Shown here piece after piece: positions 1 through 24,187 of a stretch of 64,000 nt of DNA; positions within the stretch are counted from its first letter, which is position 1; each line of letters starts with the position of its first letter. The stretch is from Takakia lepidozioides (lineage: Eukaryota; Plantae; Bryophyta). The DNA lies in assembly GCA_030704615.1 (NCBI GenBank), contig CM060733.1, positions 42,346,001 to 42,410,000 on the forward strand, written 5' to 3'. The notes beneath the pieces were generated by a model, which did no database searches, was not told the origin of the DNA, and saw nothing but the letters and a program-made list of their open reading frames with translations. Position numbers and translations under genes: made by a program.

Positions 1-3000
1 TCCATGTATCAAAAATAAGAGCATCCTATCTTGCAAATAATTGAACAATACAAAAGATACACCAACAAAGCCTATGACCAAAGAAAATGCAAAGAGAAGG
101 GGAACATGGAAGGGAAGGCCAAGTAACAGAGTAGCTCTACCTGAAAACCCGTTTCCAGAGGTTTTCAATCTCTTCGCAGATCTCTCTCCCCCTGCAAATA
201 TGTCAGATTTTGTCAAATTTCAAAAGATCTGCATTCATCCAAACTCTTACCATGGAATTACTGATGAAACTGCTGTTGTATGGCAGCATCCTGTAACCCT
301 AAACCAAATCTCTCTCCCACTGCATATATGTCAGACTCCACCCATCACAGAGTATGTCCTGGCCTTGAAAGAGGCCCTCCCACACTTTACACAGTCACTT
401 CAAGATCTCTCCTCTTGCCCATGGTGACACAAGGAGGGAGGTAGAAGGTGCTGTAGATTCTTGGGAGAGCTTCGCCACTTCTGCTGCTAATAGAGTCATG
501 GAAGGAAACTAATTATCTGTGGTAGAGCAGTAAATTGGTGGACCCATGAGGTCAAGCTCAAGATTGCTGAGAGGCAGGCGCTCTATAAGGACTGCTGTAA
601 TATCAAAGATGAAAAAATGCTCTGGTCTAGATACTACCAACTGCGTAAAGAGGTCAATCAGCTTGTAAGGGATCAGAAGAGGCTTTACTGGGAGAAGTTG
701 TACAGTGACATAAACTTAACCCACCATGGTCGTAATGACAAAAGATTATGGTTGGCCTTACAGCCAATCATCATAACACCAACAATTGCACAACCAATAC
801 ATGTACCCTACCTGGATCTTGGCAAGAACCACAACAGTGATAGACAATGTATATAGACTGGGAAAACGTAACACACCGAAGAGAAGAACGCAGAACACTT
901 TAAACCTGCCCTCATCTGCCGCAATCTGACCCACCTTAAGAAAATAATAGTCCTTTAGGTCTGGAAACCTTCAAGTGCAAACCCTGTTACCTGCTGGGGG
1001 TGCTACAAAAGAATAAACCACAAGTATCAACCAACAAAACGACTTGGAATAAAAATAGAAGAGGGTGTAAGGACAGCAATCACTGTACTATTGATAACAT
1101 ACCAGCAGCTTCAGAGGGTTCAAAGCAAAAAACATAACGAAAAAAAAACAAACCATAAACGCTACCAAGAAGCTGCTTGTAATGCTAAAAATATGCAAAT
1201 ATCTCAAGATACTAGATTCAGTTTGAAATACCCTGTCCTAACAAACAACCGTGTCTTTCAAAGGACCCCCCTCATATTTTACTTGTTAACATGGATCTAT
1301 CGAATGAATAAACTGCATGTATCAACCGTACACAGGATCACACACGGGATTGGGAGAAGCTGTTGAAACCCTGAGTGCACAACGCAGCCAAGAAACCAAA
1401 AAAATTGCAAACACTTGACTCCAAGCTACGCATTGAACGAATCATTGAACAAATCAGCAACTGCAGCAGGTTCAACAATCAACTGCCCAATTGTCTTGCG
1501 AGAATTCAAATGTGCCTGCCCATCATCAGAATTGCAGACATAAAAACAAACGGGCTCAGACTGCCCTAGGCAACCCATCGACATTCACCAGACTCTCTCC
1601 ATGACGCACTATCTGACACCCTAGCTAATGGGTGAACTCTGTCACAGAAGGTTCTGCAGCCAAGGTGGTTTTGGTTAACTCACATAAGTCACCAACAACC
1701 ACATTCTGTCATCGACCAATTAACAGCTCAAAACATGCGCACAAATTCGGCTAGAGCTTTCTATCTTCTGAAGATGGTACTCAAGAAATCGTAAAGGTTT
1801 GAACAACACTACTGATTCGCAGGTCACATGCATCAAAGTACTGAAGAGAGAACAGAAACTCATTCTTCACACATTGGTAGCAAACCCTACAAACTTACAC
1901 TCACCAGACTCCCTCCTTGACGCACTATCTGACACCCTGAACCATCAACCATGGTTTCCATAACCAACAATCCCACAAAGAAAGTAGCCTGCGAAGACAG
2001 ACACAACACCGTTCAACCAAGAAGCAAGAGACGTAACAAAAATCAGATGAAGATTTGAAACCCTAACCCTGTACATACTCTTGGGATGCCATTGAGCCCG
2101 TCCAAAACTGTTGCGGTTATGGTTATGGATGCAAAAAATCCAAGAGAGCTCCAGAGACACAAAGGAAGACTCCCTCTCCCTCACAATAAAAATAGAAGTG
2201 GATGCGAGGACGGCAATCACTCACAAGTGAACTACCAAAATGACGGTTTAGAGTTAGGGTTTCAGGCCACACAACACTTTAAACCTGCCATCATCTGCCG
2301 CAATCTGACCGACCACTGCGCTTCAAGAGATTCAGAAGGGCTTGCCCTCTGACCTTGCCCGAAAAGTGCCCACAAAGGTTCACGGCCAGACATTTCCAAG
2401 AAGCAGTGCAATGCAGCAAGCTCAACAAAATGGCAACTCAAAACCATAGAACATGATCCGGCAACTTTTTCTTCAGCCATTCTCTGAGGGTAGGAGGCGC
2501 TGCCCGCAGCAATCTATCAACCAACAAAATGACTAGGAATATAAATTGGACGCTGCCATACGCTGGCTCTTATCAGACTGCTCGACAGCTCTATGAGCAG
2601 CCTGATTAGCATCGTTCTAGAAAATACATTCTAGAGAATTACCCTGGGTGATGCCTACCTGCAGGATATTGCAGGGAAAGGAAACAAAGAGAACTCATTC
2701 ATTCATCAGGAGTAACTACAGATAACCAGATAAGGAAAAACTTAAGTAATCTGCTGTAGACCCATATAAATAACAAACAACCGTGTCTTTCAAAGGACCC
2801 TCCTCATATATTACTTGTTAACATGGATCTATCGAATGAATAAACTGCGTGTATCAACCGTACACAGGATCACACACGGGATTGGGAGAAGCTGTTGAAA
2901 CCCTGAGTGCACAACGCAGCCAAGAAACCAAAAAAATTGCAAACACTTGACTCCAAGCTATGCATTGAACAAATCAGCAACTGCAGCGGTTTCAACAATC

Positions 3001-3913
3001 AACTGCCCAATTGTCTTGCAAGAATTCAAATGTGCCTGCCCATCACCAGAATTGCAGACATAAAAACAAACGGGCTCAGTCTGCCCTAGGCAACCCATCG
3101 ACATTCACCAGACTCTCTCCATGACACACTATCTGACACCCTAGCTAATGGGTGAACACTGTCACAGAAGGTTCTGCACCTGACGAAGGAATGCGTTAGA
3201 AGACAAGCTGCTCATTGGCATTTGAGATCATAATCAACCAAGGATTCTGAAGTCATACCTAATTTTGTCATTTCCTCTTCAAAAGGAGCAAATGATCCGG
3301 TGACGACAAACTCTAAACCCTAACCCTGACCAGGTTAGGACATCTTTTCTTCTCACAAGATCTGAGACTAAAACCCTGTTTGCAGTGATGTTGTGTGCTG
3401 AGTTTTATGAGCTGGTTAAAAAATTAAAGAAGGACATTATGCGATTGAAATGACTCTATATCTACCTCACACCAATATGCTACTTGTTGATCAATCTCTG
3501 ATTGTTCCAAAAGAATTGGAGGCCCAAATTAAGACCATGTGATTCACTCTGCTTGAAATATCCAGTCTAATCCTGCTCTAGTGGCACATTTCAGAGCGAG
3601 TTTCCTCCTACAATCCCATCAATGTTCTCCTTTTTCTTGGAGGCCTCCTCTTTCTTAGTTATCTCTGCCCATCTCTTGTCGCTTCCTTCTCACAAGGGGG
3701 TTGCTAATAGAAGTGATAGTGATCGTTTGTGGACTTTTGAATTTTAAGAATTGCTGATACTTGTAGCGTGAAATAAACAACCCCTAGCTATCAAAAGTAT
3801 CAAGAAAAGATCCCAGCATCAGCAGCGGTATTCGAAGAAAATTGAACGAAATAACAGTCTTCATGCTAAGAAAACCCTAAAACGTCATAACCTCTGAATT
3901 AGACCAAACGTAC
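1..3913 (+). repeat. Left arm of large inverted repeat (partner 17182-21097); runs off the window edge
   Basis: ORFs 41..427, 617..856, 1091..1366 and 1375..1569 (+) are identical to 20671..21057, 20242..20481, 19732..20007 and 19529..19723 (-). Coordinate sums are ~21098. Homology ends at 3913/17182. Confidence 0.97.
350..762 (+). mobile_element. LINE ORF2 fragment embedded in the shared intron module (copies at 20336-20748 rc, 30500-30905, 38220-38606, partial 37716-37806)
   Basis: EYVLALKEALPHFTQSLQDL...LWSRYYQLRKEVNQLVRDQKRLYWEKLYSDIN matches ORF2 of the LINE at ~52315-52730 (EYVQALQEALPHFVQSLQEL...LWARYYQLRKDINQLVRSQKKLYWDKLYSEIN). Confidence 0.9.
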
Positions 3914-4155
3914 AAGGATCAATTAACACTCCAGCTTAAAACCATGTCCAACCCGTTCATCAGCTTTCTTTGATGACCGTGCAATCCCATACATCACTAA
4001 TGAAAGCCTCGAGGGAGCAAGTCCGAAAATCCATTCAAACCCTAACCACACTATACACCTACTAACACTTTACTGCAAGAAATAACACACCTGCTGTATG
4101 TGCAGCTGGCTTTGCGGACCCACCAGCAAGCACTCTGGATGAGACGAAAACATAC

Positions 4156-4423
4156 CTGTGGTAGCTTCAGATTCGGGAGGGCCATCGAGCAGCACGGGCT
4201 CTTTTTCGGTTCCCGCCACGCCCAAGTCTTGCTTGATTTGTGACCACGAATGCTTTGATTCACCTGTCGAGTCGAAAGGCCAGATTACACCATTCAAAGT
4301 AATCTTTCGCGGGTTTAAACCAAAGTGGCTGCCAAGAACGTTGAAGTCAACTTTGCCAGCATTCAAAGTCATGGCTGGACAGGGTGCGCCTCCGGACTTT
4401 AGCTTGAACCAAACACGCTCCAT
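4156..4423 (-). CDS. Gene A first exon: ubiquitin-like (beta-grasp-type) CR header, ending ESEATTG at a phase-1 donor; rest of the gene runs off the window's left edge
   Basis: ATG at 4423, MERVWFKLKSGG...FGLNPRKITLNG...EPVLLDGPPESEATTG; exon is 268 nt (3n+1) followed by CAG|GTATG. Fold call is by eye. Confidence 0.6.
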
Positions 4424-5989
4424 AGCTGATAAAAAGTTCATCCAACCATCCAGATCATTGACAATGCGAAGCGGAGTATCCAGTACAGTAATGAGAGAAA
4501 ATTCACCTCAAATCCAGAAGCTCTGCTTTCCACAGGCTCTTCTTAAACGCAGATGGAAAGGGAGAAGGTGTGGATATTACACTTTATAATATAATTGACC
4601 ATTTTCAAACATCGAGTCTAAGAGGAACAGTATGAAAATCGACCGGTAATGAACGTCTCCCAGTTTACCTTCATCCCACGTAGAACGGAGTTTTAGACAC
4701 AGCAGCTTCAAACTGCGACAGCTTTGACAACACCAGGAGCTAATTGCCTGTCGAGAAAATTTAAATCCTCAATTCATCCTCCCTCGACCATCCTCAATCC
4801 CCTTGAATACGAAGAGCAGCGACTACGAAAAGAGTGTACACATGAAAATCATCTTGCCCGCTCTCTCCTCCAACGAACTCCAACCAAATCGTCATGACCT
4901 ATCACTACAATCAGTGCACAACTCTCAAATCAACTCAAACAGTGCGAGAAGTAGGCGAAGATGCTCACCTTCCAGAGTTCTTCGCCGCCTGAGCGGCACA
5001 CTTGGATCAAACGCCCTCCCGCACGACGCAAACCTCTACAACTGTTTTATAACCCGAATCTTGGTCGATACTCACAGCCAGGGGCTCCAAAATACAGCGA
5101 ACCCACGGAAATCCACGGAGCTTCGTCTCAGTTGCCAAGATTCTCCGCCGAAAGCACGAGGACGCTGAGAAAGTGAACAAAAAGCAACGCCGGTTGAATT
5201 CTATATCGACTTCCTCGCGCAGCTGGAACAATAACAGTCGCTTCGTTTAGGTGTGAAGAAGAAGCAGAACCCTAGACCCTCCGGTCGTCCGCTCCATCCC
5301 ACCGCCTCGAAATCTCAGCTTACTTCTGCCCGACCGACGGATGCACGCCTAACAACGCCACCTGTCGGTCATCCGATCATCATCACATGTACAACGATTA
5401 ACGGATGGATGAATCCAAAAACCAAATGTCCGCACCCACGTCGTCTTTCCACATTCATCCGCTATGATCAGTTCCTTCAGCTTTTTGTACCTTCTCGTGT
5501 ACGGAATACCAAAAGGGCCATGCTTGTACAAGACCCCGACACCTAGAAAGATTCCAATACAGGGGGGTTTTATTCCAAAAGATTCTGTGGCACGGGCAAG
5601 AGGGCATGGGCTATTGAAAAGTAAAAGGCAAGGGGTAACTAACCCCATGCTACATGCCTGGGGGTACCAGGTATATTATAGGAGCGTATAACGTAATATA
5701 CACGTCGTATATTACTACATATGCATAGTATGTTTTTGATATTTTGGTAAAACTGCCCGGACATGAAGCATGTTTAGGGATTTGCAGCACGTCTCTCTCT
5801 CTCACGTCATCTCTCTCTCAAGGCGGGAGTTTTGCTCTGGCGATCTGTTGGCAAAGGAGCTCGAGAAAGCAAAGAGTTATGGCCTTAACCAACCAACATT
5901 GGATAAGCCTCTAACATGGATGCCTCGGCGTGAGCCTGGTCGCGTGAGCGCAACTGCGCTCACGCCACGTCACCTTGTGCCAATGCCAC

Positions 5990-6600
5990 ATCACGAATGA
6001 AGTCGTCTCGGGGGGAGAGGCGGTCACCTGGCTGACATAAATCATCCCCCAGATGGAAAAACGACACCTAATTTCCATCCGAGGCCGTTCAGATGAAGTC
6101 GTATCGGGGGGAGAGGCCGACACTTGGCCGACCGAGATCATCCTCCGGACGAAAAAAACGGCGTCGAATTTCCATCCGAGGCCGGCCGGATGAAGTCGTC
6201 TCGGGGGGATAGGTCGTCAGATATCATCTGCAGGATGGAAAAACAGCGCAGAATACCCATCCGTATCGACCCTTCATGAACAATTTTCGGTCGTTGCATC
6301 AAGTTCTTTGTGTTTTTTGGTCTAATCAGACAGTAAACTTAGAGTTTTTGGCTGCATGCCACTTTTAGGCACGTTATTCCCACCATTGTCGTCCGCTAGA
6401 GACAAATTCGGTGCCGGTTTTCCATCCGGTTGCCCTCCCGCTTACTTCCTAGATGGAAATTCGTCGCCAGTTTTCCATCTAGCCGCACTCCCGCTTACCT
6501 GCTGGATGGAAATTCGGCGACGGTTTTCCATCCTGCTACGCTCCGGTTTACTTGCAGGATGGAAATTGGGCGCCGGTTTTCCATCCGGGGATGTTCACTG
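5990..6600. repeat. Short tandem/palindromic repeats (~96-bp units ATGAAGTCGTCTCGGGGGGAGAGG; GGATGGAAA...TTTCCATCC hairpins), probably a TE terminal or LTR region
   Basis: Unit starts at ~5997, 6093 and 6190; repeated GATGGAAATT...TTTTCCATC at 6400-6590. Confidence 0.6.
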
Positions 6601-6619
6601 TCGGCCAGGTGTCGGTCAG

Positions 6620-7497
6620 ATGTTGTTGAGTTGCATCTATCATGTAGTGCACAACCAGAATTCCACATATAAATAACAAACAACCGTGTCTTTCAAATGA
6701 CCCTCCTCATATTTTACTTGTTAACATGGATCTATCGAATGAATAAACTGCCTGTATCAACCGTACACAGGATCACACACGGGATTGGGATAAGCTGTTG
6801 AAACCCTGAGTGCACAACGCAGCCAAGAAACCAAAAAAATTGCAATTGTCTTGCAAGAATTCAAATGTGTCTGCCCACAATCAGAATTGCAGACATAAAA
6901 ACAACCGGGCTCAGACTGCCCTAGGCAACCCATCGACATTCACCAGACTCTCTCCATGACGCACTATCTGACACCCTAGCTAATGGGTGAACTCTGTCAC
7001 ATAACGTTCTGCAGCCAAGGCGGTTTTGGTTAACTCTCATAAGTCACCAACAACCACATTCTGTCATCGACCAATTAACGGCTCAAAACATGCGCACAAA
7101 TTTGGCTAGAGCTTTCTATCCTCTGAAGATGGTACTCAAGAAATCGTAAAGGTTTGAACAACACTACTGATTCGCAGGTCACATGCATCAAAGTACTGAA
7201 GAGAGAACAGAAACTCATTCTTCGCACATTGGTAGAAAACCCTACAAACTTACACTCACCAGACTCCCTCCTTGACGCACCATCTGACACCCTAAACCAT
7301 CAACCATGGTTTCCATAACCAACAATCCCACAAAGAAAGTAGGATGCGAAGACAAACACAACACCGTTCAACCAAGAAGCAAGAGACGTAACAAAAATCA
7401 AATGAAGATTTGAAACCCTAACCCTGTACATACTCTTGGGATGCCTTTGAGCCCGTCCAAAACTGTTACGGTTATGGTTATGGATGCAAAAAATCAT
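6620..7497. repeat. Orphan copy of the shared CR-gene intron module, truncated by gypsy gag sequence
   Basis: Colinear with 31212-31995, 36541-36810 and blocks of 1240-2140. Confidence 0.9.
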
Positions 7498-9051
7498 TGT
7501 GAGTGTCATCACGGAGTTACCCAAGGGTTTTGAGGGGAGTACGGCTACAGGCAGTGAGAGTGAGAGTGGGTTCACAAGACGAGGTATTTGGTTCAGACCA
7601 CCTTCACCTCCACCCTCAACTACTGTAGAGTCTGACACAGACCCGGAGGCTTCATCAACAAGTGTGCAGTTTTCTTCGCCATTGTTGTGGGACGACATGG
7701 AGGAGATGTATGGAGCTGCCAAGGTACTCTGGAGCTATGGGCACAATCGAGTTGGATGACTTTATCCAGGAGTTCGACAGTTGGTGTGATTTGCAGCAGA
7801 TGCGCAATCCACAGCTGTTCACCCCATTCATGGCGTGGAAGGGATTGTTCCAGCATTTGGAAGGCCCGCCTATGGACGATTACCACGAGTTCAGGCGAGG
7901 ACATAAAGCAAAAATTGAAGAGTGGAGGATGTATTGGTCACCTGACTACGTCTCCATTACTCGAGGCACAACACAACCAGTAGCGGCATCAGCACCAATA
8001 CCTCCCACGGCTAGCACTAGTAGTGGAACAAGTAGTGTTGTTATTTCTGCAGAAGGTCCCACTACTTATCCTCCCACGACTACAACACATGTGCCTATAT
8101 TCAGCCCGGTGGTGGAGTTCTTCCAGGAGTTGCGGAGGAACTACCAAGGTGTACGGACAGAGAAGCTGCGAAGTTTGCAAGACTTCCAGCGCAAACCCAG
8201 TGAGAGCCTGCGAGAGACGTACACTCGTATGAGGCGCTTGATAAGTGTGACCCAAGGGGTTACTGAAGCTCAGGCAATCCAGTTCTGGTATGGAATTCTG
8301 GACAAGGAGCTCAGGAGAAGGGTGCGAGATGCAACCCTGTTACAAGCAGCCCAACCCACATTAGCAGATGTGTTTCTGCTGGCTGAGCGGATTGAGCTCA
8401 ACATGGTGGAGGGGTGAGTTGTTACCATTGGATTTGGCAAGGACATGCCTGCACGAGGCGCAGCTGCCAGCCCACAGGCACAAGGGACTGCCCAACAGCG
8501 TGGTCAGGGGGGCAAGGTTTCCCAACCCAAGTTCCATGGAGCTTACAGGGGACCTCAGGTGCAGAGGCCCGTGGCATCTTTTGCAGGCCAACAACAACCA
8601 GGGGTGATATGTTGGACATGTGGAGGACCCCATGTCAAGAGAGATTGCCCAGAGAGTGGCAAAAGGCCGGCACAAGCACAACCTGCACAGTTGCAGTGTG
8701 GGCATTGTGGCAAGTATGGACATGGAGATGCCTAATGTTATGACTTGCATCCTGAGTTGCGCCCAAGCCAGTTCCAAGGGAACAATGGTGGTCGGAGGCA
8801 AGGTGGACCAGCCCAGAGAGGACGAGGTGGCCAGGCACGAGGTGCAGGCCAAGGGCAAGCTCAACATGGCCAAGGACACGGAGGTCAAGGTGTTGACCAA
8901 GGCATGGCCAACCTGCTTCAGCAGCTAGAGCAGAGGCTTGCTGCCATGGCTACAGCTCAGGTGGTACCGGCTCCCAGGCGGGATGGTCCACCTCCTGCTC
9001 TTGAGGGAGGAGATATGGGAGGCATGGGATTCATGTGCGGAGCAGCAGTAC
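7498..9051 (+). mobile_element. LTR retrotransposon (probably Ty3/gypsy) gag remnant with two zinc knuckles, interrupted at 9052 by a CACTA end
   Basis: Retrotrans_gag-like LQDFQRKPSESLRETYTRMRRL; CWTCGGPHVKRDC and CGHCGKYGHGDA*C knuckles; frameshifts and stops. Confidence 0.8.
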
Positions 9052-9269
9052 CACTAGTGGGGGGCTGCTATTTCATGAGCGACATGAGCATGAGCGGGAA
9101 AAAAAAAAACATGAGCGGGCCGAATTGTGTCCACGGAAATAGGGTTAGGAGGCACGGAAATAGGGTCATGTGGACTCGTCATAGCAATGAAATGCAACAT
9201 TTTATTGCAAATTTGGTGGCAAGCCAAGTCTATACAAATGTGTCATAACTGTTATAGCAGGAATGGGAA

Positions 9270-11627
9270 CTACTCTCCTACACCTTCCGAGGAACTTGGC
9301 CCTCCTTCTTCCTCATCCCCCTCATCCCCCCCATCCCCCCCATCCTCCAAGCTCTGTGATGCATCGGTTGCACTATGCCTCTCAAAAATTCCGTCATCTC
9401 CTTGGGAGACTGTCCACCTCACCTCCTGGGAATCTTCTGCCTCTTCTCCCCCACTTTCCTCAGCAGCATCCAAGACAAATCTACGAGCCCGACGGGCTCC
9501 AATAGCTGCTGCCTCCTCCTCATCTTCATTTTCTTGAGGCTTGCCTCGTCTAAAATCTATTGTACACGACTAGGTTTGGAACACCTCCTAATGGACACCG
9601 AAGCAAGCCAGGCAGCATAAGTAGGAAGGATATAGTCCCTTTCTGGACTAGGCATGAAATCCCCCCTTGCAAAAAAAAGCACGTTCCTCCTGCCCATGAA
9701 CTCCGGTGTAGACGTCCTTCTTGCAGTACTTGACATCCTACAGTAAGAACAAATCCACTTCAAGAATGTCAATACCAGCAGAAGCAGAAAGGGTTTTCAA
9801 TGAAATAAGAGAGCGAAGGGAGGTGCCTCACGAAATCTGGAGGCAACTTACAATGCGACCACTCACTCGTAAACCGGGGGCTCCTCGGCCTCGATCCCAA
9901 CTTGTTCCTCCCCCTGTTCCTTCTTGGATTTTTCCTCATCCTCCGAGGATGTATCTTCCACTTTTGGCAGACGTTCAGCCGCTGCAAGTTCCGAGTTGTG
10001 GAGGGCAGTATCTGGCTTGAAGGCGAACACATGTCTGTCGGACAACGTCCCTGCCCACATTGAAGCACCTGAGGAACAAAGCGGGCAGTTAATAGCTTGC
10101 GGCATGCAATTGCAATCGGGCTAGGGGACAAACTGAGCACGTGAAGGCTTACCCATGCCGCAGAATCCGCCCTTGGACATCCGAGCACGTCTCCATGAGG
10201 GTTTGGATGAAAGCAGGGCTCCGGGTCCGGTTGTACCGCCACGGTTTGCCTGTCTTTGTGTCCTTCGACATACTGGAGTGGGGCACATAGTTGTAGAGGA
10301 CATCATAGATAACAGGGTCCACAGCGGCATCAACAAGACGACCGTCGTTGCAGAATTTGAACGTAGACCCTCTCTTCACAAAGCAATATGCCTCAAACAC
10401 CAATGTCTGCACATCCAACAAAAGAGGGATCAACTCCGGGATCTAGTTTAGATACACCACAATATGAGGTGAATGCAATAGATTGATAACTTACACTTTG
10501 GCCCTCTGTTCGCAACCCCTGTGTATTGATGCAGAACCATTTTCTGAGGAGGACCGGGGTGACACTTTTCGGTGTCCATCTTGCCACCGCATTCTCTGTG
10601 GTCTTCCCTCTTGTGGCAAGGACAACCACACATCCACCGTCATCCAGCAACATCCCCGCCAACCCAAACCCGGCTTTCCAGTAGTCCTCAGTAAACCTGT
10701 TCCAGGTGGGCACACCATCCAGGCCCTCCAGCAGCTCCTCATCTGGAATGTCGAGGAGAAACATATCGCAAGCTCTCTCCACCTCAACCACCCCCCCCCC
10801 CCCGAGTGCTCTTGCAATCTGTGCTCACAGCCGTGAAGAATTCCATCATGGCTTCAAAACCAGGGGTGTCTTTAGGCTCTGGACCGGCAGCCCTCTTCTT
10901 GGCTTTCCCCTTCTGCTCCGCCAAAGACTTGCTGTGTGCCACCTTCTTCGCCTTGGCAGCGAGAGCGTCAAGGAAGCTCTCATTGACGCATTGGATGATG
11001 GTTGGAGGTTCTATCTTTGGCCTGTGTGTAAACGTCACCGCCGAATATCGCCGTGTAGGCTCGCCCTCAAATGCCAACTTCTTGGCAGAGCCAGTCCCAC
11101 TCCAAACTGACTTGGGAACCCGGACGACCGGTGACTTGGTAGCAGCAGCAGCAGTCGCAGGACCTTCAACAAAGTCGTCGTCCAAGTCACTCCTTGGGTC
11201 CCCTCCTGCGCCTCCTCCGATGCCCCGATGGTTTTCTGTTTTTTGGGTGTTACTGTACTCACCTGTTTCCTTGTCCTTTTCCTTTGGCCTTTATTCTTCT
11301 CATTCAATTTCTCCTGAATTCCTGCCTGAGCAAGCTCTGCCGCTTTCCTGGAGTTCGCAAGCGCTTTTGCCTCTTTTGGACCCAACGGAGGCAGCGGAGC
11401 CCGGTTTCGTCGGGCCTCAGCATCCAGCTTCAATTGAAACTCGGATAGGTCGAGCAAGCTAGGGGGAAGGTCACATACCAAGGGCAATCACGCAAATGTT
11501 CCAGATGCCACTCCTTCACAATATTGTCAGTGTACATGGAGTCAGCCCCAGGGTTCCTCCATGCCAGGAAGAATGGTGGCTCGAAAGACAGATGACCTTT
11601 CTCCAAAAGGGAGAACTTGCAGTACCT
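9270..11627 (-). pseudogene. 3' exons of the ParB-MTase gene: beta-class amino (N6-adenine/N4-cytosine) DNA methyltransferase domain plus acidic tail
   Basis: Motif IV-like MFLLDIPD (DPPY-like, 10741-10752)...PTWN; KPWRYNRTRSPAFIQTLMETCSD; motif I split by an intron, IL..CGMG|ASMWAGTLSDRHVFAFKPD (GTAAGC donor ~10152, TCAG acceptor ~10069); frameshifts. Confidence 0.75.
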
Positions 11628-11649
11628 GCATTCATGAAAAACACAATGA

Positions 11650-12392
11650 GGTCCCTGAACTGGAAATTCGGCACCATTTTCCCAGGTTGGGGCGGAACTG
11701 ACTGGGCCTAGAAATGGAAAAATGGCGCCGAATTTCGGTTTTCGATGCCAGCCACCCTAGGGACTTAGCCATTTTGGGAGCTCTGACATGGAAATTTGGC
11801 GCCATTTTCCCAGGTCCGGCCCGAAAATGGCTAAGTCCCAGAACTTCCTGGGCCTAGAACTGGAAAAATGGCGCCGAATTTCGGTTTTCTGTGCCTGCCA
11901 TCCTAGGGACTTAGCCATCTTGGGAGCCATGAACTGGAAATTCGGCGCCATTTTTCCAGGTTTGGCCCGAAAATGGCTAAGTCCCAAAACTGCCATGGCC
12001 TAGAACAGGAAAAATGGCGCCGAATTTCGGTTTTCGGTGCCAGCCACCCTAGGGACTTAGCCATTTTCGGAGCCCTGAACTGGAAATTCGGCGCCATTTT
12101 TCCAGGTTTGGCCCGAAAATGGCGTCCCAAAACTGCCAGGGCCTAGAACTGGAAAAATGGCGCCGAATTTCAGTTTTTGGTGCCAGCCACCCTAGGGACT
12201 TAGCCATTTTTGGAGCCCTGAACTGGAAATTCGGCGCCATTTTCCCAGGTCCGGCCCGAAAATGGCTAAGTCCCAAAACTGCCAGGGCCTAGAACTGGAA
12301 AAATGGCGCCGAATTTCGGTTTTTGGTGCCAGCCACCCTAGGGACTTAGCCATTTTCGGAGCCCTGAACTGGAAATTCGGCACCATTTTTCC
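11650..12392. repeat. Tandem array of ~5 x ~145-bp units, each with internal inverted repeats
   Basis: Unit starts at ~11653, 11783, 11928, 12073, 12217 and 12362; GAAATTCGGCGCCATTTT/AAAATGGCGCCGAATTTC and AAAATGGCTAAGTCCC/GGGACTTAGCCATTTT pairs. Confidence 0.95.
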
Positions 12393-12399
12393 AAAGACC

Positions 12400-14200
12400 A
12401 GTTTTCATGCGCCACATGAGGCCTCTAACATCCTGAAATGCAAGGACTTGAAATGAAGGCATCGCCTATGTACCTGTACAGAAGGCGCATTGCTGCTTTG
12501 TCCACGTTTGGCTGGTCGGTGAACTCGTGGCTTCGGCGGGCATGGGGTATCTCCCGAAAGAATAGGTCGGTTTTGTAGAGCAGAAAGTACCTCGTCACAT
12601 AGTCGCGTAGACTCTCTGCTGCAGGAGAAATCTCCATCTTGAACTGAAGTGCTTGTGTGTCCAGCTGCTCTTGCGCATTCGTTGTCACCTGTGGAGATTC
12701 TCCATCAGATCGGTTTCCTGAAAAAATACAATGAATCCACCCCCTACAAGAGTAGAAGCGCCAAACGAAGCGTGGGGAAGTACCTGAAACCACCATGTCA
12801 TGCGGTTCATCCACATGTCGAATGTGGGGTCAGACAGTTTGTCCGGTTTGGGGAAGCTCCACATGTCCCTTGTACTTTGGGAACCATTCCAGATTTGGAG
12901 CCACCGGGTCTGTCCAACCACCCAGCATATTCGTAAGCGCCAAACACCACAAAAACGAGTTGTTGCCACCACAATTTGGTTAAGAATGTATCACCTTTTC
13001 TAGTGCATCCACACAGGATGTGGCTAGACGATGGAGCTTCTCCAATGTCATCGTGGGCTTCAGAGCATGGGAGTAGTGCTTCCCCACCTCCACCAGAAAG
13101 TCGGCACCAAGGGCGGGATCAGCTATGGCCACGTACTTTACCATCCGCGACTTGTACTTTATGCGGGCCCTGGCCTCCGCAGCTTTGAGATACGATTCGA
13201 GTGCCGGGAGGGTTAGATTCTTCTCCTCTGACTCCATGTAGAACCTCCGCGCATATGCCAAATCCTGCTGAATTTTTGTCTGTCAAGAATGCGCACATAA
13301 GATTAGAGATCCTGCTCAACACTTTTTCTTCTATTGGGGGAGGAGACACAGATTAGCTCAACAAATCTGTCAGGAGCTTTACCCGAAATATGTAGTCCAC
13401 CATGGCGTCCACGCTCAGCCTATACCAGGTTCTGTCTGCCTTTGCCTCCAACTTGCGTAGGAGGTCGGCACTGAGCGAATTGGCAAACTCTTGCACCCCC
13501 TGCTTCCCGACATCCTTCACTCGGAAGAGCATATGGGACAAGTTGGTGGCAATGAATGTCGCGGCCCTTTGCCTTGAGGGCAGGGGGTCGAGACACATGA
13601 GGGGCTGCCCCTGTGGTGGGGGTAGCGGCAGCGATAGGTATGGGGGGGCTGAAGCACCCTTGAGTGCCCAAAGCACTCAAGGAAGCAGAGGCGCTCACTA
13701 GGTGGAGCCCCGCACACCGGGTTGCAGTGGGGGTGACTCCACAATGGGTGGTGGTAGCTTAGCAGGACTTAGTGGGGGTGACATAGGACTCACCATGAGG
13801 TGGAGACCTCGAGGTGGGAGTCGTGGGGAGTCTTGGGACTCATCACGGTCCAATGGGGCCGCGGTGAGTGGGCCAAGACTCACATCGACTCATCACCGGG
13901 AGTCGAGGGTTTTCGTGGTGGTTCGCCATAAAATGGCATGGCTAGTTGTGGAACCCCCGCGGACAGCTACAGAAGTATATATAGAGGAGTAGTAACCCCG
14001 AGAACGGTGCAAGCCCGTTGGTGACGAAAAACTAGTGAGTAAGCGAGCGAGCCGGAAAGCGACCAAAGAGTGGGGAGCTGTTCTGGACTGCCAACTACCA
14101 AAGGGAATTCCCGCTGGTTCCAAATCGGTGGAGGGTTCTTTGGGAGAACAAAGGCGGACCGTTATGCCCCGGTGAGCAGCTGAAGCTCTAAGTTGGCCCG
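12400..14200 (-). mobile_element. Degenerate gag/ORF1-like insertion within the ParB-MTase gene; part duplicated at 43905-44208
   Basis: Chain of broken minus-strand ORFs (13353..13676, 12980..13261, 12685..12972, 12425..12814); 13566-13868 is similar to 43908-44208. Confidence 0.4.
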
Positions 14201-14265
14201 ACGGCCAGGTTGGGAGTTAGGCGCGCGCATCAAAACGAGTAACTATGACTTGAGGGGGAGCTTAC

Positions 14266-15833
14266 CGAAGTGAGATGCGCGACAATGAAGGCATTCTCAG
14301 TCACCCTGCAATGCCACATTTCCATCAAACAATACTGAAATGGGAATTTTCAACGAATATGAGGATTCGCAATGAAATGACTTATAATCGGATGGGTCCA
14401 AAAGCAAGAGGCGTTGTAACTTACGAGTTGATGTCTGCCATTGCAGCTTTGAGAAGACTGCGATCTTTGGGCCCCACAACCTTCAGCACAACACACTCCA
14501 CGGCGAAATGCCAATCGAGGTTGTTGGGGTGGGCTTTCGCTATGTGCTCCATCCATGCCAGGAGGCGATGATTGCCGTCCCACACGTAAAACATCTTACC
14601 GGACAAGTGCTGGAAAAGAGGATCAGTAGCAATCGATCTCTCGAACTCCTCATTTCGCCTTTGCCAATGGGGACCCCATTTGTCCACCTCATCAGAAGTG
14701 TGGGCACGGGAAGCTCCGTGGTCGTTCTCAATGGAAACGTAAAACGCGGTAGACCCCATTCGATATCCATCCCGAAAAGAGAATTTCAGCGTGTCGATAT
14801 CGCCTGGGAGGGCAGGTCTCACCACCTGCAATGACACCAAGTGGCAAAGGGGAATTCGAAGCTTGGCCGGGTACACCATGCCCCCCAGCACCCTGCCAAT
14901 GTTGTTGTGGGTTGCCTCCAACATCTTGGCAGCGGCCAACTTCATATCCGCCTCCGACATGTCGTCTGCTGCAAAGGGGTTCTTCAGCAACCCACCAGGA
15001 CCGCCAAATCCAGCCTGTACGCTGCGGGTTTGGGGCCTGGGGATGTCCGAGAGGATGTCATCCTGGTCAAAAAGCTCCCTGTCGTCCTCGTCAACATGGT
15101 CAGCCACCGGCGAAACCACCTCGAGCACTCTCCCCATCTTTACTGCCCTCTCCCCGACTTCACCTCGAACTTGCACAATCCGTGCTCTTTCTGGTGTTCT
15201 TTCCTCTCCTCCACTCTCCACCGTATGGGTAATTGCAGGGGCTGCTCTTGCCCGCGATGGTCTAACCGGTGTGTTACTGCCTCTTTGTGGTGTCTTGGAG
15301 GGATCCACTGTCTCTGTGCGTCCCTCGCTTACATGGGCATCTGTCATTTCGGCACCCCTGGCCTCTTCAGTGGCCTTTTCTCTTTCCTCCTGGCTAGCCT
15401 TCTGTCTCGCCTATTCTTTTTCCCTCTCTTTTGCCCTCTCACGGGCTTTCTGTTTCTTAATAGGGCTAGCAGCAGGGGAGACGACCACCTTTGATTGAGG
15501 CGAACTGACACCCTCGCGCGCACTGCTCACTCCCCCCTCCGCAACCCGTGACGGCTCTCTCGCCGGGGATTGCATGTGCTTGGCTTTCTTCTTCTTCTTT
15601 GCGTGGGCGGGCCCTACTACATGTGCATCAACAACCTCCATTGCCGGATTTGCTGTCCTCACGTCCTCACACCCTTCACCTGCCATGCCACCTGCACCAA
15701 CCTCCCCAATGCCTATTCTGTCGTACTCTCGCTGCAGGTCCTCCCGTCCACCAACAAAAGGTTTAAGTTTACCCTCTCGCCCCAAGTTGGGCGATTCAAA
15801 CATGCGATGAGTTGCAGCTGTCGATGATACCAC
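14266..15833 (-). pseudogene. 5' exons of the ParB-MTase gene: low-complexity N-terminus + ParB/Sulfiredoxin-like domain
   Basis: One frame 15833->14425 with a single in-frame TAG at 15411; MFYVWDGNHRLLAW motif; phase-2 intron 14424-14306 then a 40-nt exon giving DINSVTENAFIVAHLTS and a GTAAG donor. Confidence 0.75.
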
Positions 15834-15894
15834 CAGCGTGCCGGGCTCGTCGTCACACTGTCATTCCCAAAAATCGTGAGAACCAACATCGGAA

Positions 15895-16170
15895 TAAAAA
15901 CCACCATCTTCCAGTATCATTTGCTCATAGATCTCCAAAGCCTCCCTACCATACCCATGCTGAGCATATCCCGTGATCATGGCGTTCCAAGAGACCACAT
16001 CTTGTTGAGTTACATTGTCAAACACTTTGCGCGCTTCTACATTTAGCATACGGGCTGTCTCGAGAATGATATCTGACCCAATTCTAGCTTTGATGATGTT
16101 AGCATGTACCTTTGTGCCCTTTTCAAGAGCTTGGAGGCTCTCACACGCACGAAGAACGCAGAAAAATACC
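15895..16170 (-). pseudogene. PLS-type PPR gene fragment
   Basis: ACESLQALEKGTKVHANII...ARKVFDNVTQQDVVSWNAMITGYAQHGYGREALEIYEQM. Confidence 0.85.
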
Positions 16171-16946
16171 CTCTTGTTTGGGCTGAGCCCTTGGTGCGTT
16201 GAATCGCCTCCTTGGTTCACAATGCGCAGCGCTCCTTCAGGCCATTCAAGAAAGCTTCGGGTCAAGAAAGGTTCTGGGTTTTTGGGCAGGCCGGGCAGGT
16301 CCGACGAAAATTGACGACGACGAATCGTGGCGACGATGACGAGGTGCACCCTATTCCTGCTCTCGCTAAACTAGCTTCCGACCTTCGGTCGTCGCTACAG
16401 TTAAGAGTAAAATAAAATAATTTTGCCTTAGGTGCGTAGGGATTGGGCCTAGTACCCTACTATGGTGATATCGTGGTGGTCGTCATCAACAGGACGAGGT
16501 TAGAGGAGTTTGCCGCGCGGGTTTGGCTTCGTTTTCTGTCTGCGGGCGGGCGTTTGCATTTCTGCTTGCCTGCGTCTGTGGGCCTCTCTGCTGTGCGCGG
16601 GCTCGTCTTTGAGCGTTCTTGTTTCGGATTCAGCCTGCGTGTGCAAGCGTTTTGGCTTTGGTGTGCGTGCGGGTTCTCGGCGGGGTTGTTCGAGGTAATA
16701 AAGCTTCCGCCGCGGTTGATCATCAGCTGCGTGGATACTATTCTTTTTTGTGCGTCTGTTGTTTCTCTTGATCATGTGCCTGGACGGACGAAGTGGTTGG
16801 TGTGTCGAAATTAAACCATCACTCATTCGGTGATCTAGGGTTTGGTGGGCGGTGTACAGGTTGAACATGGATAGCGCTTTTTAAGTCGCTGGATTAGCCC
16901 GTCCTTTCTTCTGGAGCTTCTTTCTTCGCTTGCAACTCTTTGCCTG

Positions 16947-17181
16947 ATGGAGGACATGGAGGTGGTTGACGCCTACGGAGACCTCCGCCAACTCTTGCAG
17001 GCGAAATGTCTAGGTTCGAAGTTCAGTGATACCGACATCAAGAGATTGGTGGATGCGGGATTTGAATCAGAAACTGATCTTAAAGCAGGCGATAGGGAAT
17101 CCTTGATGAGCACTCTTCCTGGACGACCTGGTAAAGTGGCCGTTCTCCTCAAGACATTCGCCCAATCTGAAGCCACCACAG
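16947..17181 (+). CDS. Gene B first exon: SAM-like helical CR header, ending QSEATTG at a phase-1 donor
   Basis: 235 nt (3n+1), CAG|GTGCGT; LRQLLQAKC...FSDTDIKRLVDAGF...DRESL...GRPGKVAVLLKTF is homologous to the header at 32390-32632. Confidence 0.7.
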
Positions 17182-20100
17182 GTGCGTTTGGTCTAATTCG
17201 GAGGTTATGACGTTTTAGGGTTTTCTTAGCATGAAGACTGTTTTTTCGTTCAATTTTTTTCTTCGAATACCGCTGCTGATGCTGGGATCTTTTCTTGATA
17301 CTTTTGATAGCTAGGGTTTGTTTATTTCACGCTACAAGTATCAGTAATTCTTAAAATTCAAAAGTCCACAAATGATCACTATCACTTCTATTAGCAACCC
17401 CCTTGTGAGAAGGAAGCGACAAGAGAAGGGCAGAGATAACTAAGAAAGAGGAGGTCTCCAAGAAAAAGGAGAACATTCATGGGATTGTAGGAGGAAACTC
17501 GCTCTGACATGTGCCAGTAGAGCAGGATTAGACTGGATATTTCAAGCAGAGTGAATCACATGGTCTTAATTTGGGCCTCCAATTCTTTTGGAGCAATCAG
17601 AGATTGATCAACAAGTAGCATATTGGTGTGAGGTAGATATAGAGTCATTTCAATCGCATAATGTCCTTCTTTAATTTTTTAACCAGCTCATAAAACTCAG
17701 CACACAACATCACTGCAAACAGGGTTTTAGTCTCAGATCTTGTGAGAAGAAAAGATGTCCTAACCTGGTCAGGGTTAGGGTTTAGAGTTTGTCGTCACCG
17801 GATCATTTGCTCCTTTTGAAGAGGAAATGATAATATTAGGTATGACTTCAGAATCCTTGGTTGATTATGATCTCAAATGCCAATGAGCAGCTTGTCTTCT
17901 AACGCATTCCTTCGTCAGGTGCAGAACCTTCTGTGACAGTGTTCACCCATTAGCTAGGGTGTCAGATAGTGTGTCATGGAGAGAGTCTGGTGAATGTCGA
18001 TGGGTTGCCTAGGGCAGACTGAGCCCGTTTGTTTTTATGTCTGCAATTCTGGTGATGGGCAGGCACATTTGAATTCTTGCAAGACAATTGGGCAGTTGAT
18101 TGTTGAAACCGCTGCAGTTGCTGATTTGTTCAATGCATAGCTTGGAGTCAAGTGTTTGCAATTTTTTTGGTTTCTTGGCTGCGTTGTGCACTCAGGGTTT
18201 CAACAGCTTCTCCCAATCCCGTGTGTGATCCTGTGTACGGTTGATACACGCAGTTTATTCATTCAATAGATCCATGTTAACAAGTAATATATGAGGAGGG
18301 TCCTTTGAAAGACACGGTTGTTTGTTATTTATATGGGTCTACAGCATATTACTTAAGTTTTTCCTTATCTGGTTATCTGTAGTTACTCCTGATGAATGAA
18401 TGAGTTCTCTTTGTTTCCTTTCCCTGCAATATCCTGCAGGTAGGCATCACCCAGGGTAATTCTCTAGAATGTATTTTCTAGAACGATGCTAATCAGGCTG
18501 CTCATAGAGCTGTCGAGCAGTCTGATAAGAGCCAGCGTATGGCAGCGTCCAATTTATATTCCTAGTCATTTTGTTGGTTGATAGATTGCTGCGGGCAGCG
18601 CCTCCTACCCTCAGAGAATGGCTGAAGAAAAAGTTGCCGGATCATGTTCTATGGTTTTGAGTTGCCATTTTGTTGAGCTTGCTGCATTGCACTGCTTCTT
18701 GGAAATGTCTGGCCGTGAACCTTTGTGGGCACTTTTCGGGCAAGGTCAGAGGGCAAGCCCTTCTGAATCTCTTGAAGCGCAGTGGTCGGTCAGATTGCGG
18801 CAGATGATGGCAGGTTTAAAGTGTTGTGTGGCCTGAAACCCTAACTCTAAAACGTCATTTTGGTAGTTCACTTGTGAGTGATTGCCGTCCTCGCATCCAC
18901 TTCTATTTTTATTGTGAGGGAGAGGGAGTCTTCCTTTGTGTCTCTGGAGCTCTCTTGGATTTTTTGCATCCATAACCATAACCGCAACAGTTTTGGACAG
19001 GCTCAATGGCATCCCAAGAGTATGTACAGGGTTAGGGTTTCAAATCTTCATCTGATTTTTGTTGCGTCTCTTGCTTCTTGGTTGAACGGTGTTGTGTCTG
19101 TCTTCGCAGGCTACTTTCTTTGTGGGATTGTTGGTTATGGAAACCATGGTTGATGGTTCAGGGTGTCAGATAGTGCGTCAAGGAGGGAGTCTGGTGAGTG
19201 TAAGTTTGTAGGGTTTGCTACCAATGTGTGAAGAATGAGTTTCTGTTCTCTCTTCAGTACTTTGATGCATGTGACCTGCGAATCAGTAGTGTTGTTCAAA
19301 CCTTTACGATTTCTTGAGTACCATCTTCAGAAGATAGAAAGCTCTAGCCGAATTTGTGCGCATGTTTTGAGCTGTTAATTGGTCGATGACAGAATGTGGT
19401 TGTTGGTGACTTATGTGAGTTAACCAAAACCACCTTGGCTGCAGAACCTTCTGTGACAGAGTTCACCCATTAGCTAGGGTGTCAGATAGTGCGTCATGGA
19501 GAGAGTCTGGTGAATGTCGATGGGTTGCCTAGGGCAGTCTGAGCCCGTTTGTTTTTATGTCTGCAATTCTGATGATGGGCAGGCACATTTGAATTCTCGC
19601 AAGACAATTGGGCAGTTGATTGTTGAACCTGCTGCAGTTGCTGATTTGTTCAATGATTCGTTCAATGCGTAGCTTGGAGTCAAGTGTTTGCAATTTTTTT
19701 GGTTTCTTGGCTGCGTTGTGCACTCAGGGTTTCAACAGCTTCTCCCAATCCCGTGTGTGATCCTGTGTACGGTTGATACATGCAGTTTATTCATTCGATA
19801 GATCCATGTTAACAAGTAAAATATGAGGGGGGTCCTTTGAAAGACACGGTTGTTTGTTAGGACAGGGTATTTCAAACTGAATCTAGTATCTTGAGATATT
19901 TGCATATTTTTAGCATTACAAGCAGCTTCTTGGTAGCGTTTATGGTTTGTTTTTTTTTCGTTATGTTTTTTGCTTTGAACCCTCTGAAGCTGCTGGTATG
20001 TTATCAATAGTACAGTGATTGCTGTCCTTACACCCTCTTCTATTTTTATTCCAAGTCGTTTTGTTGGTTGATACTTGTGGTTTATTCTTTTGTAGCACCC

Positions 20101-21097
20101 CCAGCAGGTAACAGGGTTTGCACTTGAAGGTTTCCAGACCTAAAGGACTATTATTTTCTTAAGGTGGGTCAGATTGCGGCAGATGAGGGCAGGTTTAAAG
20201 TGTTCTGCGTTCTTCTCTTCGGTGTGTTACGTTTTCCCAGTCTATATACATTGTCTATCACTGTTGTGGTTCTTGCCAAGATCCAGGTAGGGTACATGTA
20301 TTGGTTGTGCAATTGTTGGTGTTATGATGATTGGCTGTAAGGCCAACCATAATCTTTTGTCATTACGACCATGGTGGGTTAAGTTTATGTCACTGTACAA
20401 CTTCTCCCAGTAAAGCCTCTTCTGATCCCTTACAAGCTGATTGACCTCTTTACGCAGTTGGTAGTATCTAGACCAGAGCATTTTTTCATCTTTGATATTA
20501 CAGCAGTCCTTATAGAGCGCCTGCCTCTCAGCAATCTTGAGCTTGACCTCATGGGTCCACCAATTTACTGCTCTACCACAGATAATTAGTTTCCTTCCAT
20601 GACTCTATTAGCAGCAGAAGTGGCGAAGCTCTCCCAAGAATCTACAGCACCTTCTACCTCCCTCCTTGTGTCACCATGGGCAAGAGGAGAGATCTTGAAG
20701 TGACTGTGTAAAGTGTGGGAGGGCCTCTTTCAAGGCCAGGACATACTCTGTGATGGGTGGAGTCTGACATATATGCAGTGGGAGAGAGATTTGGTTTAGG
20801 GTTACAGGATGCTGCCATACAACAGCAGTTTCATCAGTAATTCCATGGTAAGAGTTTGGATGAATGCAGATCTTTTGAAATTTGACAAAATCTGACATAT
20901 TTGCAGGGGGAGAGAGATCTGCGAAGAGATTGAAAACCTCTGGAAACGGGTTTTCAGGTAGAGCTACTCTGTTACTTGGCCTTCCCTTCCATGTTCCCCT
21001 TCTCTTTGCATTTTCTTTGGTCATAGGCTTTGTTGGTGTATCTTTTGTATTGTTCAATTATTTGCAAGATAGGATGCTCTTATTTTTGATACATGGA
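17182..21097 (-). repeat. Right arm of the large inverted repeat = intron/micro-exon region of gene B
   Basis: Reverse complement of 1-3913; begins exactly at the GT donor of header B. Confidence 0.97.
20907..20957 (+). CDS. 51-nt phase 1-1 linker exon of gene B (GGERSAKRLKTSGNGFS, NLS-like); mirror copy for gene A at 141-191
   Basis: TTTGCAG|...TTTTCAG|GTAGAG, length 3n. Confidence 0.6.
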
Positions 21098-21105
21098 TCT
21101 GTCAG

Positions 21106-23182
21106 GAGTGACGGAAAGTGTGTGGGTTTTGCTTACAGAATCAGTGAAGGTGGTTATGCAAGAATGGAAATTGAAATTTTCTGGGTTTTTGGACACGTTC
21201 AAAAGATGGGGTGCAATTTGTCTATACAGAACGGTGTGCCACTTGACCACCGTGGTTATCCAAGCATTTTACTGGATAAATTAACTGCTCGTTGGACTGA
21301 AGATGTTGGTGATTTGTGGGAACGAGCGAATGATGGCTCGACTGGTGTTGTGCCAGTTGTTGGAGTGAGTGGGAGTGGGAAAACTCGGTTTCTTTACGAG
21401 CTGCTTGCAGAGAAGTGGGGTTTTTTTTGGACAGCTAAAACCAAAGGAAACGGTGGGTCAGATGATGTCGCCTCTGTGAGTTCTCACGAGATAGAGGTCG
21501 ATAAGACAATGAATCACAGGAATGTGATGAAACGTATGAGGTGTGCCATTCTTTCAAGGTTGTTAATCTTGGAATTTTGTCACCAAGAAATTCCTGATTT
21601 GAGTCCTCTGCAATGGCTCATGCTCCAGGTGCAATTCCGTGCTTTCCTTGGTGCAGATCGTAACGATCTATATGATGTGCTTACTCGGAAACTTTTTAAC
21701 GTGGTTACTTCCCTGGAAGATTCAGAGGGGCTAAATGCTAGGATAGAAAAACTGTGGACGGATTTAGAGGGGAAGGTTGGCACTTTCACTGTAGTTCTGG
21801 ATGAAGCACAGGTGTTGGGAAGGAAAATGTAAATGACTATGAATCCCCCGAGACGAAAGAGCTAAGGTCCATTTTTTCTCCGTTGATCAAAGCCCTAGTG
21901 GGGCCATCTACGCGTTGCCAAAGCAGAAAGTATTTGTTGCTGGTACAGGTGTCAGCTTTTTGAAGCTGGAAGCGGACATAGGTTCGCTGATTGCAAAAGA
22001 AGGGGGTGGTGGCCCGGTTCAATTTTCTTCTGCTCCATTTTCTTCATGGACAGATGTGCGTCAGGTTCTGAAATTCTGCAGCGAGTACCTGAAGCTAGAG
22101 GATGATCATATGGAGGACAATGCCCAGTATCTGCTGGAAAAGTTCAGAGGCCGTCGAAGGTGTTTGGTAAGTTGTGTCGAGCGCCTTCTGAGGAAGGCTG
22201 GAGGAAGATGGGATATAACCGTAGTAGACAACTATTTCAAGGAGATCACAAGCGACACCAATGACAGCACTTCCATTTATTATGCTGTGAGCGCTCTGTG
22301 TGGAGCAAAAGGCACATTTGTCCTGAAAGAAGAATCATTCAATGGTGCTTCCTTGGTGCAAAGAATAGGAACCTCCTTTGCCTATGCAGGGAGGGGAGAA
22401 CATAACCGTTTCAACGGACGGAGATATGACTTTGCTCGAGTGTGGCCTTGGACAGCTACACCATTCAACAGGTTCCCAATTCACTTTCTCTATAGTCGAA
22501 CGACAGTCCATCATAGCATCATGAACTATTTGACGATCAACCATTCATTTGAGAAATCACTGAAAGACTACATGGTTGATTGCAAGGATGATCCCAGTGC
22601 AATGGGTAGGGCATGGGAGAAACTTTTCACAGTTCATGTGGCCAAGCTGTTTGACGGCACAAAATTGTTGCCGATATGTGCTGTTTCAAGGATGCAACCC
22701 TGCCTCCAAAATTCGCAAGGGACAAGCCAACGATTACCGGTGAAGGTGAAGGAGTGTGGAGGGAGTCATATAGGATCCACACCGTAAGTAAATTTCTTGA
22801 TGCTGAAGAGAAATCTCGTCCGCCATGCCTCATTTTTGACGACAGATCTGGAGCTGATGTTCTTTTTGTTGTGAGACTTGGGAATTTGAAGATTCCGGTC
22901 TTCTGTCAACTGAAGCTGCGATCTGAGGTGCAGTGTGGCTAGAGCGTGGCAACTACAGATCCGGAACAGATGTACAAGAATAGTTCCGAGTCCAAAACAG
23001 GGTGCTTGCCGCATGCAAAGATGGTTGCATCCAGCTTGGTAGTTGCCTATCCTGCAAAGAAGCCAGCTAAACTCCAATCTGAATGCCAAGATAATCGTTT
23101 ATTGGCTATATTGGACAGGTAGAAGCGGAGGATTTGTTTGACCGCGTGGTTATGTGATTTCTTACGTTCTATCAAGGAGTGA
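21106..23182 (+). pseudogene. Gene B effector exon: Crinkler-type P-loop NTPase + PD-(D/E)xK restriction-endonuclease-fold nuclease, frameshifted
   Basis: PSILLDKL; Walker A VVGVSGSGKTR; Walker B FTVVLDEAQ; GRAWE; SGADVLFVV...VFCQLK. Frames switch at ~21215, 21830, 21915, 22410 and 22680. Phase-1 acceptor GTCAG|GA at 21105. Confidence 0.8.
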
Positions 23183-23890: not shown

Positions 23891-24187
23891 CTGACGGGTG
23901 TGGCATACTCTTCTCCCGGGTTCCTGGTCCAGTTCCTATGCCTCGCGGCGCGGTTACTGTGAAAGAGGTTATTTTCTCCTCTCACTGTTAAGGGGCCCCT
24001 TGATTTTGAAGCTGTCGCTCCCCAGGTGGTTCCCCTTTTTTTAAGAAAAAACAATAAATAAAATAAAATAAAAGATAAATACAAATACGTGAAGAATACA
24101 AATATATGAAGAGGTACAATACATGAAGAAATCAAAAGTGCTTTTTATTTCGGAACAAGGGAGTAAAAGATGAAAACCATTATTTAN

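Follow-up and report, generated by a model that had tools for sequence, protein, structure and literature searches.

The DNA analyzed here is a 64,000-nucleotide (nt) window of contig CM060733.1 from the moss Takakia lepidozioides, and all coordinates below are positions in this window unless another sequence is named. At its left end lies a large inverted repeat that carries parts of two copies, A and B, of a predicted Crinkler/RHS-type (CR) gene. The top inverted pair found by a repeat search of the window was 1-3841/17257-21097, which aligned without gaps over 3841 nt and was followed by a 3-nt indel. By BLAST and global alignment, the arms run from 1 to 3913 and from 17182 to 21097; across 3916 columns they differ by 19 mismatches and one 3-nt indel (99.44% identity). 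An initial annotation had described an inverted repeat of at least 3.9 kb with a 13.3-kb spacer and with two alternative first exons, or headers, facing outward at the spacer ends. Both the arms with their spacer (3914-17181) and the orientation of the headers were borne out, since open reading frames (ORFs) with phase-1 GT donors are present at 4441-4156 on the minus strand (header A) and at 16947-17181 on the plus strand (header B). Because position 1 of the left arm pairs with position 21097, the window edge truncates the repeat, and the arms must be at least 3.9 kb long; the homology of the right arm may extend further right, with the partner sequence beyond the window (Table 1).

Intron 1, as contained in the arms, is a transposon mosaic, and further copies of its fragments within the window are 76 to 98% identical. 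One of the fragments is a long interspersed nuclear element (LINE) piece in the left arm at 341-971, which is related to an endonuclease-bearing element at 51762-52754. Given that the two arms hold the same transposon fragments and that the other copies in the window differ to this extent, the duplication, or the last conversion between the arms, is younger than those insertions. The innermost 600 nt of the arm had no other copy in the window. Telobox-like AAACCCTAA motifs were frequent within the arms. A third colinear but deleted copy of the mosaic at 30492-32297 matched left-arm positions 341-3316 in four blocks at 93 to 96% identity; it was considered as a third copy of the gene and rejected because the transposon mosaic alone is common to both, with no match to exon 2, the body, or a header.

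Table 1. Features of the inverted repeat and its surroundings in the 64,000-nt window.
Feature	Position	Strand	Description
Left arm	1..3913	-	Copy A intron 1 from 242 nt past its donor, exon 2, and part of intron 2
Copy A exon 2	141..191	-	Identical to 20907-20957
Spacer	3914..17181	.	13.3 kb; header A, gag-like and other transposon remains, tandem repeats, PPR fragment, header B
Copy-A-specific segment	3914..4155	-	242 nt between header A donor and arm start; bounded by direct repeat GTATGTTT / GTACGTTT
Header A	4156..4441	-	Orphan ORF, 95 codons from first ATG; ends ...ESEATT, phase 1, donor GTATGT at 4155
Pentatricopeptide repeat (PPR) fragment in spacer	15864-16370		
Header B exon	16947..17181	+	226 nt from ATG at 16956; ends ...QSEATT, phase 1, donor GT at 17182
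Exon 1 end remnant	17161..17181	+	19/21 identical to header A exon end 4176-4156
Right arm	17182..21097	+	Gene B intron 1 from donor GT, exon 2, and part of intron 2
Exon 2 (putative)	20907..20957	+	51 nt, phase 1 to phase 1, encodes GGERSAKRLKTSGNGFS; splice sites read from sequence
Gene B body exon (exon 3)	21139..23185	+	Predicted CR-type P-loop NTPase (Walker A GVSGSGKT, Walker B VVLDEAQ) and REase-like C terminus (IFDD...CQLK)
Assembly gap	24187..24686	.	500 N, ~1 kb past the end of gene B and 3 kb past the visible arm; only gap in the window

Effectors of the CR type are composed of a header, a P-loop nucleoside triphosphatase (NTPase), optionally a helix-turn-helix segment, and a restriction endonuclease-like (REase) domain, and they also occur in land plants, according to the account of Zhang et al. 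2016 given in PMC5289972. The same account describes the headers of the family as varied and exchangeable and allows for helical headers that are not ubiquitin-like (Ubl) (PMC5289972). When a spliced model of gene B was searched exon by exon, the body yielded 187 relatives at an E value of ≤1e-3 in a HMMER scan, with the best matches in Ceratodon (60%), followed by Selaginella and then Rhizophagus. The closest relative is Ceratodon purpureus KAG0564131 (P0001), a protein of 695 amino acids (aa), and one of the Rhizophagus relatives (P0154) has the Pfam Crinkler N-terminal domain PF20147. Walker A and Walker B motifs, with weak AAA_16 and AAA_22 Pfam matches, are found in the piece at 21107-21829, and the piece at 22655-22939 aligns to the C termini of P0001, P0003, P0004, and P0154 at E values of 1e-11 to 1e-30, with the ...D...CQLK motif conserved. 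By its predicted domain content, the body is a CR-type P-loop NTPase with a C-terminal PD-(D/E)xK-like REase domain. The initial designation of the body as an NTPase-REase is thus upheld by homology, but the body is broken.

Reading body B against KAG0564131 requires four reading frames, and in-frame TAG codons occur at 22940 and 23120. A frameshift-aware alignment to the same protein contained 10 frame changes and 1 stop. Six of these changes are in well-conserved stretches, near 21207, 21821, 21928, 22404, 22501, and 22671; the other four are in the weakly conserved tail, and any changes after 22980 are only possible ones. In the DNA alignment, the first frame change appears as a 1-nt deletion at ~21205 relative to Ceratodon. 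A small intron at 21812-21866 was considered as an explanation for a frame change and rejected, since the third frame there aligns with the Ceratodon protein, which makes it two frame changes. Because most of the breaks lie outside homopolymers, we read them as real decay, and both these sequence contexts and the in-frame stops argue against assembly error as the source of the frame changes. Body B is, on the strength of this alignment, a pseudogene with at least six frame changes and two in-frame stops.

Between header B and the body lies the putative exon 2, whose product has a basic KRLK stretch and which is not conserved in Ceratodon. The acceptor of the body exon (21138/21139) and ~25 nt of the intron upstream of it are conserved with the Ceratodon locus (L001; Ceratodon purpureus CM026429.1), where the open CR frame likewise extends to the upstream side of the annotated start.

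An AlphaFold2 (AF2) model of header B built without an alignment consisted of five helices at a predicted local distance difference test (pLDDT) score of 83.5, and its best Foldseek matches were SAM, RAD51-N, and NusA (HhH)2 domains, with TM scores of 0.55 to 0.63 and E values that were all above 0.1. The earlier description of this header as SAM-like agrees with a five-helix fold that has SAM and (HhH)2 domains as its top matches, although these matches are weak. Header B is also 38% identical over 63 residues to a Ceratodon exon, L001:3056-3281, which is 226 nt long and ends in phase 1. This Ceratodon exon is on the same strand as the Ceratodon CR gene, 6.7 kb upstream of it, and is annotated as being spliced to a different, nSTAND3-like NTPase exon. 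Since Ceratodon has counterparts of the SAM-like exon and the body with order and strand preserved, we infer that copy B represents the ancestral locus. No inverted repeat of ≥150 nt was found within 10 kb of the Ceratodon loci, and almost no transposons were common to the window and the DNA around the Ceratodon genes.

The Ceratodon region contains the gene with the SAM-like header and NTPase at L001:3056-5429, then the intact CR gene at 10001-12348 and a kinase gene at 13628-15505, and it looks like a small conflict-type cluster with modular first exons. Moss CR-type genes appear to keep the header on a separate phase-1 exon, an arrangement that would make header exchange by intronic recombination easy.

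Header A has a different character. Its frame is open for 116 codons into the phase-1 GTATGT donor. The initial annotation had called it Ubl-like, a label that found no support: header A had no Pfam match at an E value of ≤10 and no relatives in two atlas searches, and its AF2 model, likewise built without an alignment, reached a pLDDT score of only 44.6, with no confident fold, and was too poor for a structure search. A word-index search also returned no match, albeit among proteins of 0.55 to 1.75 times the query length, so that a longer header-bearing protein would escape it. Neither header A nor header B matched the Crinkler domain PF20147 at an E value of ≤10. The antisense strand of header A is equally open (ORF 4143-4586), and this antisense ORF had no relatives in Pfam and word-index searches. 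The likeliest reading of header A is flanking sequence, or a piece of some gene, that by chance is in frame with a 7-codon exon remnant. The earlier statement that the same body carries two unrelated N termini stands insofar as duplicate copies of one intron and its exon 2 are preceded by two unrelated first-exon ORFs; the body that is visible in the window is a pseudogene.

The coincidence of the arm edge with a splice site, which had suggested an exchange of headers, was only partly upheld. The homology had been placed exactly at the GT of the header B intron, and on the B side it does begin at the G of that donor (17182). On the A side, however, the arm begins 242 nt downstream of the header A donor (GT at 4155), and 19 of the 21 nt at the exon ends are common to the two copies. 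Given this identity of the exon ends, the homology enters exon 1 and is broken by an indel, without a clean stop at the splice site, and we infer that the true breakpoint of the duplication is inside exon 1. The 242-nt segment that separates the exon end from the arm in copy A is bounded by an 8-nt direct repeat, GTAYGTTT, and its first 23 nt are similar to the beginning of the intron. Since deletion of an intron start would be tolerated only if a donor was left, the apparent coincidence of the edge with the splice site is removed. Within the segment, a 24-nt core at 4055-4078 matched a ~115-nt element with a telomere-like GGTTTAGGGTTT core that is repeated almost identically in two Ceratodon introns (L001:3915-4030 and L001:14280-14400); the match was considered as a conserved intron feature and rejected because it belongs to this repeated element.

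The differences between the arms are distributed very unevenly. By left-arm position, there are none in 1-2033, 7 in 2034-3500, and 12 in 3501-3913, which amounts to 2.9% in the innermost 413 nt, and confinement of all differences to the inner part would have a probability of ~4e-7 under uniform divergence. The locus has two long, near-identical inverted arms around a unique spacer, and the divergence between the arms is nonuniform, as in a homogenized inverted segmental duplication or palindrome. We interpret this gradient as the mark left by gene conversion between the arms, with an edge effect. Because the gradient fits such conversion, the duplication is likely older than the overall divergence of 0.5% suggests. 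The steep gradient would represent a clean, small-scale case of inverted arms evolving in concert within the nuclear genome of a plant.

Taken together, these results make it probable that the locus is a fixed, ordinary inverted segmental duplication of a decayed CR-type gene whose arms have been homogenized by gene conversion. Simple inverted duplication, which the initial annotation had named as its fallback, fits best. Copy A would have arisen by inverted duplication of the B locus, with the breakpoint in the last 21 to 50 nt of exon 1. A later 242-nt indel, either a loss from copy B or a gain in copy A, would have occurred between, or have created, the 8-nt direct repeats and split the exon remnant from the remaining homology, which would explain why contiguous homology now starts at the B donor GT. 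Arm-to-arm gene conversion since then may have homogenized the arms, completely in the outer part and more weakly toward the edge. Since the outer 2 kb of the arms are identical, body A, to the left of the window, is probably the same dead sequence as body B, and an exchange of headers between the two would change nothing. Homologous recombination between the arms could occasionally flip the spacer, as it can in any long inverted repeat, but as a by-product and not as a programmed or functional switch.

Several observations weigh against a plain duplication of a dead gene. The header B exon is intact despite the dead body that it precedes. The chance of a 116-codon open frame running into a phase-matched donor, as in header A, is ~0.4 to 1%, which leaves room for a real captured exon. 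The PPR-DYW gene of the window is likewise split over several frames, so some of the frame changes in body B could be assembly errors. Finally, body A lies outside the window, and both its identity to body B and its broken state are presumed from the arms.

A single locus that was folded back or misjoined could mimic an inverted repeat, or polishing with multimapped reads could make the outer part of two diverged copies look identical; the outer 2033 nt of the visible arms are indeed 100% identical, the arm runs off the window, and a 500-N gap, which is a caveat on the assembly of the region, lies 3 kb past the visible arm. We nevertheless regard an artifact as distinctly unlikely, as the 19 mismatches and the 3-nt indel form a smooth gradient and not a sharp step, and the two inner junctions differ, each leading into unique sequence with its own ORF. 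The same gradient implies repeated recombination between the arms, and crossover is an alternative outcome of the same intermediates, as is generally known from inversions at inverted repeats and from the flip-flop of the plastid inverted repeat. The palindrome could then be competent for recombination, with the orientation of the spacer polymorphic in the species through nonallelic homologous recombination and the headers exchanged without functional consequence. This extension is unlikely, though by no means far-fetched, given that one orientation was seen in one assembly. An origin as two recent insertions, in opposite orientations, of one mobile element with an NTPase-REase ORF, whose termini would form the inner arm edges, would account for the near identity of the arms, and the NTPase and REase modules of CR proteins are thought to be transposon derived, according to PMC5289972. 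This origin is scarcely credible, however, since the homology extends past the proposed terminus to the end of the upstream exon (a match at 19 of 21 nt, displaced by 242 nt in copy A), the order of SAM-like exon and CR body is common to Ceratodon, where the acceptor is conserved, and the innermost 600 nt of the arm are without another copy in the window.

That the arrangement could work as a header switch was the central proposal of the initial annotation. Its geometry is sound: it follows from the arrangement that crossing-over between the arms would invert the spacer and give each downstream copy the first exon of the other. Were both copies live, one kind of NTPase-REase body would occur with two different headers, and inversion might switch between them. 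In favor of this, each header ORF reaches a good GT donor in phase 1 and closes with the common ...SEATT, the frame is kept by exon 2 and the exon 3 acceptor, and the Ceratodon SAM-like header is annotated on a different NTPase body. CR proteins are moreover described as joining the same toxin domains to diverse headers (PMC5289972, reporting Zhang et al. 2016). Such a functional swap is nonetheless exceedingly improbable, because body B has at least six frame changes and two in-frame stops, the bodies are probably identical so that a swap would be without effect, header A has no relatives, Pfam match, or confident fold, and no recombinase was found in the scanned ORFs of the spacer and flanks. 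That scan covered 20 ORFs of at least 100 aa, unspliced, none of which had a recombinase or integrase Pfam domain, so that no dedicated site-specific recombinase was present among them. In place of short, specific inverted recombination sites, the arms consist of at least 3.9 kb of generic intron and transposon homology. With long generic arms, no recombinase domain in the scanned ORFs, and a dead body, a shufflon-like switch is unsupported.

A broader version of header exchange takes in plant CR-type genes generally. With the header on its own phase-1 exon, followed by a long intron, intronic recombination between inverted paralogues could re-pair headers and bodies, and this locus would then have been caught in the act, possibly still polymorphic in orientation and with at least one live copy outside the window. 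We consider this scenario very improbable. Oomycete Crinklers (CRNs) have a recombination hot spot between their N and C termini, and re-pairing of headers within introns, if true, would be the exon-shuffling counterpart of that hot spot. As it stands, the locus matters little, being by our reading a small palindrome with a dead copy of a conflict-type gene, and its main use is as a caution that long inverted repeats beside splice sites are not switches.

Elsewhere, a PLS-class PPR array with a DYW deaminase domain is present in the window, along with remains of LINE and Ty3-type reverse transcriptases and TTTAGGG repeats. The PPR gene, at 47231-50443 on the minus strand, has an E motif and a DYW domain and ~302-nt tandem PLS triplets and is split over at least six overlapping frames; either the gene is a pseudogene, or the splitting reflects assembly errors of the indel type. 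An open 470-codon ORF with a protein kinase domain (Pfam Pkinase; E value, 1.7e-7) occupies 34896-36305 on the minus strand; the transposon fragments of the intron in the arms recur in the 3.5 kb that precede this ORF (36.5-39.8 kb). Within the spacer, a tandem array at 11696-12393 has a 146/289-nt unit in 4.8 copies with 91% matches, and the large ORFs around it had no Pfam domain at an E value of ≤0.01. Downstream of gene B, a tRNA-like stretch at 23826-23900 on the plus strand (GGTAGCTCAGTTGG...) was considered as a tRNA and rejected, as it was not called by ARAGORN; it may be the head of a short interspersed nuclear element (SINE). Interstitial plant-type telomeric repeats (TTTAGGG, ~10 copies) are present at 63629-63713.

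Among known systems, bacterial shufflons and inversion switches (R64 Rci/sfx, Hin/hix, and Gin/gix) use short, specific sites and an adjacent dedicated recombinase, and both orientations coexist in culture. The Takakia locus resembles them in that a segment between inverted repeats could, by inverting, join one or another coding end to the constant portion of a gene. It differs in its long generic homology, in that no recombinase was found, in its plant host, and in its broken gene. Its likeness to the CR family lies in a body with NTPase and REase regions that is homologous to Rhizophagus proteins carrying the Pfam Crinkler N-terminal domain, whereas it departs from that family in being a pseudogene, in having headers that do not match the Ubl Crinkler domain, and in placing the header on a separate exon 3.7 kb upstream. 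The closest single counterpart is Ceratodon KC19_8G085700 (KAG0564131.1, a hypothetical protein), to which the body is 54 to 62% identical in amino acids and 77 to 81% identical in nucleotides, and with which it shares the exon 3 acceptor and, upstream on the same strand, a SAM-like first exon that ends in phase 1. Unlike the Takakia copy, the Ceratodon gene is intact, has its annotated start inside the body exon, and has no inverted duplicate within 10 kb.

Inverted arms that undergo conversion, and inversions mediated by inverted repeats, are familiar from the palindromes of primate sex chromosomes and from the FLNA-EMD flip at human Xq28. The arms described here are small (at least 3.9 kb) and hold a dead gene and transposon debris, and here conversion is deduced from the gradient and inversion is only a possibility. 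The Takakia locus is otherwise like these palindromes, with kilobase-long inverted arms that are more than 99% identical, a unique spacer, apparent intrachromosomal conversion, and the potential for inversion by homologous crossover.

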